From contig NW_026936003.1 of assembly GCF_032062105.1 (NCBI RefSeq), forward strand, positions 186,001 through 250,000: a stretch of DNA of 64,000 nucleotides, read 5' to 3'. Made by a program: the position numbers and the translations under genes. Positions 44,817 through 63,312 of this stretch are shown one piece after another. Source of the stretch: Saccostrea cucullata. Taxonomy: Eukaryota. The notes below the pieces were generated by a model. The model had not been told where the DNA came from. It saw only the letters and a list, made by a program, of their open reading frames with translations, and did not search any database. Every line of letters begins with the position of its first letter. Position 1 is the stretch's first letter.

Positions 44817-47012
44817 AATGGCCGTGCACAAAGTGCACGTATCTTAACAGACCAGAGAGGATGTGCTGCGAGATTTGTGGCTTCAGGTCTATTGAAGATG
44901 ATGAAGTCCCTTCTACTATTGTTCATCCTCTCTCCACATTTGACATAGAGGAAGATTCTGTAACAACCGATTCTAACCGAGACTCCTGGAATCCACCCCA
45001 TCAAATATGTCCACCAAGTCAGTCCACAGGATATTGGTTTGAGCATATGGGCGACGACAGGCGAAAAGGTACATACATGTGCTTAACGATGTCAAAAATC
45101 CACAATCAGTATTAAAACAAATATCTATATTATTTTATTTTGGATGTTGTGTAATTTTTAAAAGATAAACTACTTCAGAAATATTTGAGTGTTATTTTGT
45201 CATTTTTGATATCTCAAAAAATGTATTTCATATACATTATATATGTTTCGCATTTCTGGAATTTCAACCTGATATATTTTCTTCTGATTCTTAAAGTTAT
45301 CAAATACATCAACGAACAAAAATTTCAGAAATCTATTTTTGGAATGTTTTCATCACTGAAAATATCCTCACACTTATTTAATCACTAAAAAAATTCCTAT
45401 ATTTGTTTTCCCTTTCAAAGACGGAAGCTTTTTGAGAGATGAGTTGAGGATCATACTGGTTGGAAAAACCGGATCTGGTAAAAGTGCGACAGGAAATACC
45501 ATTTTGGGCAAAAGGATTTTTGAATCGGATGTATCTAATTCAAGTATTACCAAATGTTGCAAAAAAGGATCAGTCCGAAGATTCGAAGAGGAGTTACTAG
45601 TCGTAGATACTCCAGGCCTTTTTGACACAGGTCTCTTATTAAATGAATGCTACATTTCTTTAAAATCCAGAGGCAAGAGGATGGGGAAAAGATTTAAAAA
45701 GATATTTTTTAACATATTTTACACATAGCTATTTAATCTTTTACGCTGATTTATAAATGTAGATCCAAATTATCTGAGTTCAAAAAATTCATGCACGAAA
45801 TATAATTATGAAGTCACAACCGTAAATAAGAAACGATGCCTAATAAACTTGTCTATCTTTCGAGAGTTGTATTGCGGAAAAACTATTTCTTCCACCATGC
45901 AATTATAACAGTTTTTTCATCTAGAAAATTACAGAGCAAACCACCATTTAATTTTTTGATTATATTTTAGACTAATAGGCTTATCAAGATAATCAAAAAT
46001 ACACTATAATTTATCAAAATAAAGAAACAGTTGTATTATGATTTTTCCAGGCATGACAAATGAGGATATTACTAAGGAGATTTTGAAATGCGTGGGAATC
46101 AGCGCCCCAGGGCCTCATGCCATTTTGCTCATCATCGGAATCGGTCGGTTTACCAAAGAGGAAAGAGACACAGTTGAATTACTACGGAAAGCCTTTGGTC
46201 CAAACATGCTGAAATATTTGATAATTGTTTTCACACGAAAAGATGATTTAGACCGTGGGGGAAAATCTATAGAGCAGATTATAAATGATGCCCCTTCGTC
46301 TTTAAAAGAAATAATCAGCAGTTGTAAAGATCGATTCTTTGCCATAGATAATACAGAAAAAGGTACTGAAAAGTCTGAAAAGCAGGTGATGGCCCTTATA
46401 GAAATGATAAAAGCAATGGTGAAGGAGAATGGAAACAAATTCTACACTAGTACTATCTTTGACCAATCTGAGTTGGCTATTAGAGAACGCGAAAGAGAAC
46501 TGAGAGCTAAATATGAGAAAAGCATGGAGGAGATCTCAAATCTTAAAAAGAGAGAAAGGACATTGGCTGACAAACTAGCATGTATGGAGGATCAGCTTCA
46601 AATTGACCAACAAAGTCTCACTCGCCGACTCAGTTCTTTACAGACGGATATGGACCATTTGATGATCGAAACCATTCCTGATAGTTTTGATGAGGATGAA
46701 AACTCAAAATTGGTCAGTTTGCAACAGATGATTTTAGGAGTGAAGAGCCGTCTGGAAGATGTGAGGCAAGAACAAGAAGAGAAGATGGACGAAGATTTCA
46801 GGTGTATGTTTCCCCATGAGTGCTCTGCATTTCATCATCCATATAGCGATGGGCTTGACCGATATTTCAGAGACAATGTTCGAAATGAGATTGAAAGTGG
46901 AGATACAAATATATTGAAAAAAGCGTGGAAGAATATCAAAAAGGCGGGATCAGAGCTAGTCAATAAGTTTAAGGATATATTTGACACAGTGAAGGAGAAG
47001 ATGGGAGTTTGA
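44817..47012 (+). CDS. GIMAP: NZF-zinc-finger GIMAP/AIG1 GTPase copy 1; exons 44817-45068, 45421-45630, 46051-47012; first coding exon unresolved (weak candidate 42194-42224)
   Basis: [20 protein letters not shown]; G1 GKTGSGKS, G2 SSIT, G3 DTPG, GPHA..GRFT.EE, G4 TRKDDL; coiled coil. All introns GT-AG, phase 1, in frame. Confidence 0.85.
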
Positions 47013-47464
47013 TGAATTTTTCATCAGTTACTTTATAGTTTCATACTCTTGATTGCATGTTAATACATCATCATGCACCAATTGTTGTGATTAATGTTTC
47101 AGTAAAAAAAATCCACTTTGCATCAGCAACCTAAATTATCATATAGTAGTCTCATACAAACGTTGCTATGTTATATATTAAAATCAAATAATTTCTATGC
47201 TAAAAGTATTACGGGTTTTTTTCTTATGTCAAAAAAAGACGAATCAGATGAGCGTCAAACTTTCAGCTGTCTGTCAGTTTTGTTGTTTGTTATTTATGCA
47301 TGATCAATGGGATTTTTCTTTTACTTTTTTGTAATAACGAACAAAATACAGTCCTAATTTTACCTTATACGAAACAGAAACAGTCATATTGTTTAAAAGT
47401 ACACACATACAAAGTTATTTCATTTTCATATACATTCCTGGTTTTTAAGAGGAAAATTTATTAA

Positions 47465-61700: not shown

Positions 61701-63312
61701 ATGACTACAAGTGCCTAAAAATATAAAAATTCTGTCCGGTCACAAATGTACGCTGTATTTATAAGGACAACTTAAAAAAAACGTTCTACACAGTCATGTA
61801 GTTATCGATTGCTGTGAAATAAGTCAGAAAAAAATATATAAACCAGACACATTTGCATTTGCAAAAAGACAGTATATACGTGTAAACCTTGTAAACTATT
61901 ACATGTACAAGTATTTTATTGAGATTGTTGAAAGCCCTGCAACATCAACATTTTTCAGCAGCCTGATTTAAATATAGATCGTTCTAAGATATTGATTTGC
62001 GACCGAATCAGATTGGAAATTTGTTTGTTGTTTAACGTCGCGGGTTCGAATCCCACTGAGGGACATGGAGACTTCGGATGAGATCGTAAAAAGGTCCCGT
62101 GTCGCGGCACATTTGTAGGTGATGGCACGAAATCCCTCATTGCTCTATGGCCCTGAATGCCGAGCATACGACAAAATTTGTACCTCTCCATCGGCAAGTG
62201 GTGGTGTCTCCATATGAGTGAAATATTCTCGAGAGGGACATAAAACAACAAACAAACAATCAATCATTCTGTTGTTCATGTTTTATTTCATTGTAGGGCT
62301 ATCCAATGAGGACATCACAACAGAAATCCTGAAGTGTGTGGGCCTGACGGCCCCTGGTCCTCACGCCATTTTGTTGATAGTGGGGATCGGACGTTTTACT
62401 CAAGAAGAAAATGAAACCGTGGTCCTTCTCCGTAAAATGTTCGGCGCAGATATGATGAAATATCTCATTGTTGTGTTCACTCGGAAAGATGATTTAGACC
62501 GAGGTAAAAAGACAATCCATCAAATTGTCAGAGATGCTCCGAAGTGTCTCCAAGATATTATAAATGAGTGTGACGACCGTTACTTTGCTTTGGATAATAC
62601 CGGGGATGATCCGAAAAATTCTGAACAACAGGTCCAAGAGTTATTGGACATGATACAGTGCATGACCAGGAGAAATGGCGGGGACTATTATACAAGCCCT
62701 ATTTTTGATGAAACAGAACTCGCAATCCGGCAAAGAGAGCAAGAGTTAAAGAAGCAGTTAGAGACTGAAAGCAAAAAGCGATTCACTAAACTTCGAAAAC
62801 GACTCTCTGAAGAATACCAGGAAAAGAACAATATATATAAACAGCACGAACAATATTTGTTGGAAAAGTTAGAAACGTTGGAACAACAACGATTCAGTGA
62901 AAATGATGCTATGTGCAAGAGACTCACCCAGTTACAAACAGAAATGGATAATCTTCAGATAGAAGCCATCCCTGAGACGTTTGAAATGGAAGAAGGGGGA
63001 CACGTATCAGGAATTCATCAAAAAATTTCGGAAGTCAAACAGAAACTAGCGGAAGTCCGCAGAGAACAAGATGAACTTTATTCTAGAACTGTCTCTGCTA
63101 TTCCTGATATTGATTCCACTCCTGGATATGTTGAAAATGGCGGGTGGGAAGTGGTGCGTGAGAGTGTTCGAGATGAAATCGAGAGAGGAGACAAGAATAT
63201 TTTAAAAAGATTTTGGTCGAATATAAAAAATGCTGGCCTTGGTTTACTTCAAAACTTTAAAGATATGTTTGAAATTCTTAAACAAAGAGCTGGCATTTCT
63301 TCCTCTTCGTGA
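57737..63312 (+). CDS. GIMAP: Double-zinc-finger GIMAP/AIG1 GTPase copy 3; exons 57737-57902, 58282-58431, 58883-59074, 62297-63312 (507 aa)
   Basis: [19 protein letters not shown]; [20 protein letters not shown]; [25 protein letters not shown]. Total 1524 nt in frame with phase-1 GT-AG introns. The acceptor at 58882 is less certain. Confidence 0.85.
58652..58708. repeat. (CT)n microsatellite in a GIMAP copy 3 intron
   Basis: Directly visible. Confidence 0.95.
59224..59346. mobile_element. Tiny Harbinger-type palindromic MITE (intronic)
   Basis: CTG|gggaccataaaact..gagctcacttttg ... caaaagtgagctc..agttttatggcccc|CAG. Confidence 0.7.
62037..62268 (+). mobile_element. tRNA-derived bivalve SINE (Meta-domain-like), 5'-truncated; tail-only copy at ~60433-60480
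   Basis: B-box gggttcgaatccc; aggtcccgtgtcgcggca...ggcacg core; tail ctccatatgagtgaaatattctcgagagggac..aaacaa(caaa)n(caat)n. Confidence 0.75.

Follow-up and report, generated by a model that had tools for sequence, protein, structure and literature searches.

Tandem GIMAP GTPase genes of an oyster encode an N-terminal zinc finger with the complete signature of ubiquitin-binding NZFs

A 64,000-nt stretch of the genome of the oyster Saccostrea cucullata (contig NW_026936003.1, positions 186,001 to 250,000; hereafter the window) contains three tandem genes for GIMAP (AIG1-type) GTPases, each of which carries, on an exon of its own, an NZF zinc finger that is spliced in frame to the GTPase. A first-pass annotation, made from the DNA alone, had proposed this fusion for three paralogs. 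Its motif matches are exact and its translations correct, and in each gene a match to the Pfam family Zn_ribbon_RanBP (PF00641) is followed downstream by AIG1 (PF04548). In no animal are the molecular cues of GIMAPs, an expanded group of immune-associated GTPases, well understood. The occurrence of a conserved, exon-encoded module of the ubiquitin-reader type on several bivalve GIMAP lineages yields a testable hypothesis, namely that these proteins recognize ubiquitin conjugates.

The window is AT-rich, with the base composition of animal-type DNA, and its exons agree at or near 100% with NCBI proteins of Saccostrea cucullata. A strict DNA pattern for W-x-C-x2-C-T-[F/Y]-x-N has three matches in the window (at 44819, 52275, and 58290), all on the forward strand, and none in 100 shuffles of the window (0 expected). 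Genes 1, 2, and 3 correspond to the NCBI models P0009 (480 aa), P0001 (487 aa), and P0011 (507 aa), which are predictions apparently derived from the same genome and do not count as independent evidence. The coding exons are as follows, with the finger residues as read from the translations.

40716-40734, forward strand: gene 1 exon 1, coding part (six codons and one base), with a GT donor at 40735; from a pattern search for the N-terminus of P0009 and the sequence
44817-45068, forward strand: gene 1 NZF exon of 252 nt (phase 1-1), with its finger core at 44819-44878 (T-Y, Ile preceding the final Cys)
45421-45630, forward strand: gene 1 first AIG1 G-domain exon (P-loop to DTPG); AIG1 E 2.8e-23, tblastn 98.6% to P0009
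46051-47012, forward strand: gene 1 last exon, with the remaining AIG1, coiled coil, and C-terminal helices; AIG1 match and sequence
52106-52154, forward strand: gene 2 exon 1 (ATG, 16 codons, and one base); sequence, RNA joint 52152/52268 (cut +2) in contig X1, and P0001
52270-52473, forward strand: gene 2 NZF exon of 204 nt (phase 1-1), with its finger core at 52275-52334 (T-F, Val preceding the final Cys); flanked on either side by RNA joints
53129-53338, forward strand: gene 2 first AIG1 G-domain exon; RNA joints 52472/53128 (cut +1) and 53337/53443 (cut +1), both GT..AG
53444-54444, forward strand: gene 2 last exon, with the remaining AIG1, long coiled coil, and C-terminal helices; AIG1 match, RNA, and structure model
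57737-57902, forward strand: gene 3 exon 1 (ATG), with a shortened C4 finger at 57755-57808; sequence and P0011
58282-58431, forward strand: gene 3 NZF exon of 150 nt (phase 1-1), with its finger core at 58290-58349 (T-Y, Leu preceding the final Cys), 27.6 bits
58883-59074, forward strand: gene 3 first AIG1 G-domain exon; sequence and P0011
62297-63312, forward strand: gene 3 last exon, with the remaining AIG1, coiled coil, and C-terminal helices, preceded by a 3.2-kb intron; AIG1 match and sequence

Checked base by base, the introns of all three genes are GT..AG and the proposed splices keep the frame. The junctions that join finger to GTPase (45068/45421, 52473/53129, and 58431/58883) are also those of the three NCBI models. 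A short ATG exon lies upstream of each NZF exon (at 40716, 52106, and 57737), that of gene 1 being 4 kb away. The symmetrical 1-1 phase of the NZF exons is the form expected of a shuffled module, and such an exon could be skipped without a break in frame.

The encoded proteins follow a common order: a short leader, one NZF, a poorly conserved linker of ~30-70 residues (acidic and Pro-rich after the finger core in gene 1), the AIG1 G domain, a long coiled coil, and C-terminal helices. Gene 3 additionally encodes, ~50 residues ahead of its NZF, the shortened C4 finger W-x-C-x-C-G-x2-N-x5-C-x2-C, which lacks T-F and has no Pfam match; it is conserved in P0010 of Crassostrea virginica, in P0043 of Pinctada, and in the transcript contig L007. 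The intron between the NZF and G-domain exons of gene 3 contains a (CT)n microsatellite of ~60 bases (58650-58710).

For gene 2, splicing was followed in RNA by aligning two oligo-dT runs bearing the same species label (X21 and X22) and two contig sets to window positions 52000-54700. The joint 52473/53129, which the first-pass annotation had named as a check, is carried by six reads in X21 (five start positions), by five reads in X22, and by the 900-nt contig X1, which spans exon 1, the NZF exon, the G-domain exon, and exon 4. RNA also carries the joints 52154/52270 and 53338/53444, while no exon-skipping joint of gene 2 appears in this region at the reporting threshold. The RNA joints of gene 2 rule out an annotation artefact or a chance open reading frame (ORF). 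Intron-free transcript contigs of ~2 kb from three public runs contain the gene 3 orthologue P0012, its two fingers and AIG1 sharing a single frame. In contig L007, the correct frame likewise passes without interruption from the short finger through the NZF into the start of the downstream sequence, the gene caller having begun at a later Met.

Despite the shared species label, the reads of X21 and X22 are 95-99% identical to the assembly and show many fixed differences from it, which suggests a different population or a cryptic lineage.

The GTPase part is an AIG1 domain. PF04548 matches gene 2 with an E of 1.6e-63, gene 1 in two parts (2.8e-23 and 7.6e-37), and the last exon of gene 3 with 1.4e-38. 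The motifs by which AIG1 proteins are recognized (G1 P-loop, G3 DTPG, the conserved box, and G4 T/N-K-x-D) are all present and are invariant in the full-length alignment, and the G domains of the three genes are 67-75% identical. The window genes are tandem, anciently duplicated GIMAP GTPase genes. In GIMAPs, the G domain and the coiled coil mediate nucleotide-dependent dimerization or oligomerization; to judge from their intact G motifs, the oyster proteins would likewise bind and hydrolyze GTP and oligomerize in a nucleotide-dependent manner.

A full-length AlphaFold2 (AF2) model of the gene 2 protein, built on a shallow alignment of 11 sequences (mean predicted local distance difference test, pLDDT, 63.8), contains the G-domain fold, predicted disorder at residues 44-89 between the finger and the G domain, and a continuous helix at 289-373 (pLDDT ~90) followed by further helices to the C-terminus. 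The predicted helix at 289-373 fits the coiled coil after the G domain by which molluscan GIMAPs are recognized in PMC7053062.

With the vertebrate GIMAP/IAN GTPases, the oyster proteins have in common the AIG1 G domain (P-loop, DTPG, the conserved box PGPHA..LL....GRFT.EE, and TRKD) and the helical or coiled-coil extensions, as well as an organization in tandem gene clusters and lineage-specific expansion. They differ in the N-terminal NZF on its own exon, as PF00641 occurs in none of the vertebrate GIMAP entries listed. The earlier statement that mammalian GIMAPs have no such domain also agrees with a survey of 11 human NZF proteins, in which no GTPase is among those named (PMC11372445).

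An NZF is defined by a Trp, four zinc-binding Cys, an Asn, T-F/Y after the second Cys, and, typically, a hydrophobic residue in the second CxxC (PMC11372445). The T-F/Y and the hydrophobic residue contact the Ile44 patch of ubiquitin, and T-F/Y separates NZFs from other RanBP2 fingers (PMC11372445). All of these residues are found in the fingers of genes 1, 2, and 3, and the full ubiquitin-binding signature attributed to these fingers in the first-pass annotation extends beyond the window: across 12 aligned finger segments, drawn from Saccostrea, Crassostrea, Ostrea, Pinctada, and transcript assemblies, the W, the four Cys, the T, and the N never change, F or Y fills the aromatic position throughout, and the third site is in every case I, L, V, or M. 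Among distant paralogues or orthologues the 20-residue NZF core is 45-55% identical, compared with 14-35% for the linker. As isolated pieces, the fingers of genes 1, 2, and 3 match PF00641 with E values of 7.6e-5, 5e-5, and 1.8e-6 (22.3, 22.9, and 27.6 bits), against a gathering cut-off of 27 bits; in a six-frame scan of the genome they score 25.4, 28.2, and 28.0 bits, with gene 1 just under the cut-off.

A profile of the finger segments was searched against all solved-structure sequences. Its top matches are HOIL-1L (6.7e-9), Npl4 (2.4e-7), and TAB2 (6.9e-7), followed by TAB3, TRABID, HOIP, YAF2, Vps36, and RYBP, while Ran- or RNA-binding fingers (Nup153, ZRANB2, RanBP2, and RBM10) reach only 1.6e-3 to 0.09. 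At the level of sequence, the profile ranks ubiquitin-binding NZFs ~1000-fold or more above Ran- or RNA-binding fingers. In the profile alignments, the oyster T-Y/F falls on the T-F, and the hydrophobic residue of the CxxC on the Met, of Npl4 and HOIL-1L. Based on this ranking and the full signature, the oyster fingers are closest to ubiquitin-binding NZFs; on the ranking, we reject an RNA- or Ran-binding type as the main interpretation.

All defining residues are likewise common to the oyster fingers and the NZFs of Npl4, TAB2/3, HOIL-1L, Sharpin, HOIP, TRABID, ZRANB3, and RYBP/YAF2. However, the host proteins named are ubiquitin ligases, deubiquitinases, kinase adaptors, unfoldase cofactors, or chromatin proteins and never a GTPase, whereas the oyster host is one. 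The pairing of a non-ubiquitin finger with an NZF in gene 3 recalls HOIP. A further parallel, and a precedent for the proposed design, is CAPN15, a ubiquitin-directed calpain with N-terminal NZFs (PMC12805371; PMC11372445), in which the NZFs steer an enzymatic or effector domain to ubiquitinated targets. The effector of CAPN15 is a protease and its fingers number five, whereas the oyster proteins are GTPases with one or two; the likeness is one of analogy, with no homology outside the finger.

The fusion is not confined to the window. The strict T-F/Y NZF motif has 25 matches in the genome (four for a reversed-pattern control), which also has at least 143 AIG1 matches. Five of the motifs lie just upstream of AIG1 exons: the three in the window, one on contig C19241 (protein P0040), and one on contig C17905. 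With at least 5 of ~25 T-F/Y NZF motifs preceding GIMAP genes, these genes account for a sizeable part of the oyster NZF repertoire. On C17905, a phase 1-1 NZF exon splices in frame, via a Gly/Arg-rich linker, to an intron-free AIG1 ORF. This gene (C17905:60000-69999; L003 2077-2018 and 7786-7727, reverse strand) belongs to a second GIMAP clade, clade B, with the layout T-H finger, T-F NZF (third site Ala or Ile), RGG linker, and AIG1, and clade B models are present in S. echinata, Magallana gigas, C. virginica, and Argopecten. No finger is encoded in the DNA between the C17905 gene and the AIG1 gene next to it (L001 2271-3461).

Other matches of the genome scan form tandem T-F/Y NZFs, with three within 600 bases at C16368:247748-248314 and several in C9824:221461-247764; they probably represent oyster versions of multi-NZF proteins (TRABID or HOIP, for example). 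Identical or near-identical NZF matches occur on different contigs (C12276:946363 and C21937:51161; C6968:636 and C19059:6357), which suggests retained haplotigs and gene counts that are inflated in this 1.17-Gb, 23,869-contig assembly.

In a tree of the G domains, the clade that holds the window genes is supported at 100/97 and comprises only finger-bearing proteins, from oysters, pearl oyster, and scallops. Each window gene has orthologues in other oyster genera. By these sequence relationships, the window genes are old paralogues and the fusion of finger and GTPase is old as well. The branch between clades A and B has 76/29 support in a tree with long branches and is compatible with the finger having been gained once or twice.

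In database records, PF00641 and PF04548 co-occur only in mollusc entries among the 240 homologues listed, and predicted proteins with both domains are present in NCBI/UniRef records of several bivalves. A mollusc cluster of 64 proteins in a protein atlas has AIG1 in 100% and PF00641 in 14% of its members, with match scores of at most 0.81, and serves as a lead only. A profile search of 1.84 billion representatives, which gives no census by taxon, is dominated by multi-AIG1 proteins, with fingers only in P0022, P0040, P0043, and P0206 among the 150 matches listed. The N-terminal 112 residues of gene 3 retrieved only gene 3 itself and its Ostrea edulis orthologue in a search too word-limited to map spread. 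One of the two fingers is absent from the database isoforms P0297 of Ostrea edulis and P0296 of C. angulata, a hint of cassette-like alternative splicing.

As the best explanation for this architecture we propose, with moderate confidence, a GTPase scaffold that is guided by ubiquitin and comes together on structures that are poly- or multi-ubiquitinated. The first-pass annotation had likewise read these proteins as innate-immune GTPases recruited to ubiquitin-tagged targets; the gene structure, the splicing, and the conserved NZF signature are shown by the present data, whereas the binding of ubiquitin, avidity by oligomerization, the kind of target, and an immune role are inferred. The NZF would most likely contact the Ile44 patch of ubiquitin via the T-F/Y and the hydrophobic residue of the second CxxC. 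Because the affinity of a single NZF for ubiquitin is low (tens to hundreds of micromolar), avidity would be needed, and a useful affinity could arise as the GIMAP part dimerizes or oligomerizes through its G domain and coiled coil. The GTPase would then assemble on poly- or multi-ubiquitinated surfaces or, alternatively, a GIMAP scaffold would capture ubiquitinated cargo. Because a weak NZF sits on a flexible linker ahead of an oligomerizing G domain and coiled coil, an avidity-driven ubiquitin reader is the most economical reading. If it is correct, a GTPase would join the short list of NZF-steered effector types.

The first step of this proposal, T-F-dependent binding of ubiquitin by the oyster fingers in vitro, we consider quite likely. 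Every human NZF covered in PMC11372445 binds diubiquitin, with a dissociation constant (KD) of 4-350 uM. We also predicted how the finger of gene 2 (P0001:13-50), together with zinc, would form a complex with ubiquitin from the oyster itself (L004:1495-1722, reverse strand). The complex scores 0.35, compared with 0.02 for the best control, with at least 91% of contacts alike in three runs and a partner pLDDT of at least 68, for a verdict of weak support.

Several observations weigh against a ubiquitin-reading scaffold. The complex score is a weak pass, and as structures of NZFs with ubiquitin have been solved, the prediction may be reproducing the known family. The AF2 model of gene 2 is poor in the finger (pLDDT 53-58, no zinc), and two of the three fingers (genes 1 and 2) are under the Pfam gathering score as isolated pieces. 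Furthermore, the corresponding fingers lack the signature in Mizuhopecten (E-Y, and N replaced by C) and in Mytilus (K-I); since the signature has been lost in some relatives, the finger can be dispensable or repurposed.

The alternative that survives best retains ubiquitin as the ligand. Here the finger would bind it only with a specific partner, that is, on one substrate or one chain type, and the GIMAP would be a signalling adaptor (for example, NF-kB/TAK1-like or in the control of cell death) and not a cargo coat. Models for such behavior are NZF1 of HOIP with NEMO/OPTN, TAB2 with K63/K6 chains, and HOIL-1L with M1 chains. The best solved-structure matches of the oyster profile are NZFs of LUBAC, the complex that builds linear ubiquitin chains, and of the TAK1 pathway; moreover, a non-TF finger is paired with an NZF in gene 3, Pinctada, Argopecten, and clade B, as in HOIP, and secondary NZF patches are able to confer linkage or substrate specificity (PMC11372445). 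However, positions beyond the defining residues vary among the paralogues, the stretch that follows the finger shows poor conservation and predicted disorder, with no evident HOIL-1L-like specificity helix, and a linkage preference is absent from most human NZFs (PMC11372445). We regard a partner-restricted adaptor as rather unlikely.

A ligand other than ubiquitin, such as a ubiquitin-like protein, Ran-GDP (as for Nup153/RanBP2), or single-stranded RNA (as for ZRANB2), appears improbable. All of these fingers belong to one fold and one Pfam family, and the RGG-rich linker of clade B has a composition common in RNA-binding proteins, but Ran- and RNA-binding fingers fare ~1000-fold or more worse in the profile search, and the T-F/Y that sets NZFs apart (PMC11372445) is invariant. 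Equally hard to sustain is a finger that does no targeting and whose part is chiefly intramolecular or structural, or that is a relic (for autoinhibition of the G domain or as a skippable cassette): although the symmetrical exon, the single-finger isoforms of Ostrea edulis and Crassostrea angulata, and the decayed signature in Mizuhopecten and Mytilus would fit such a role, oysters, pearl oyster, and Argopecten all retain the defining residues between drifting flanks, and the exon is included in the gene 2 RNA examined, where no skipping joint reaches the reporting threshold.

If the ubiquitin-guided scaffold is the correct reading, it could be extended to a role in bivalve cell-autonomous immunity, in which the NZF-GIMAPs would form a GTPase coat aimed by ubiquitin on pathogen vacuoles, viral factories, or damaged organelles, with GTP-driven oligomerization adding avidity and membrane action. 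We put forward this extension tentatively and consider it doubtful as it stands. In functional terms, such a protein would be a single-protein counterpart to the way in which mammals recruit GBP/IRG GTPases in a ubiquitin-dependent manner, and it would provide a concrete molecular cue for GIMAPs.

Molluscan and lancelet AIG1 proteins resemble the oyster NZF-GIMAPs in joining an AIG1 core to adaptor domains and in forming expanded tandem families thought to be immune (PMC7053062, PMC12373286). The partner modules recorded for molluscan AIG1 are death/CARD, ARM, kinase, Hint, and transmembrane (PMC7053062); the words 'zinc', 'RanBP', and 'ubiquitin' occur 0 times in that paper, as do 'RanBP' and 'zinc finger' in the lancelet study (PMC12373286). 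In a library of 8.4 million papers we found none describing a GIMAP with an NZF or zf-RanBP, and the papers on AIG1 together with RanBP2 are unrelated. The suggestion that the architecture is undescribed thus stands for the searched literature, though not for databases, where predicted bivalve proteins in NCBI/UniRef already contain it: the architecture is undescribed and not unseen, as public gene models carry both Pfam matches. It is also present in the farmed oysters Magallana gigas and Crassostrea virginica, for which infection models and expression data exist.

The remainder of the window contains several transposable elements. By eye, the translations of two forward-strand ORFs at 10581-11612 and 19403-20536 (343 and 377 aa) resemble HARBI1/PIF-type nucleases, and each has an opposite-strand ORF beside it (12947-13351 and 20978-21907, reverse strand; 134 and 309 aa); from their sequences, these pairs are probably copies of PIF/Harbinger-type transposons. 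A retroelement with reverse-transcriptase and RNase H-like ORFs occupies 28719-33381 on the reverse strand. Just upstream of the GIMAP cluster lies an element resembling a long interspersed nuclear element (34486-37172, forward strand), with endonuclease and reverse-transcriptase ORFs (519 and 394 aa), and a retroelement-tail ORF (43808-44131, reverse strand) is found inside the 4-kb first intron of gene 1.

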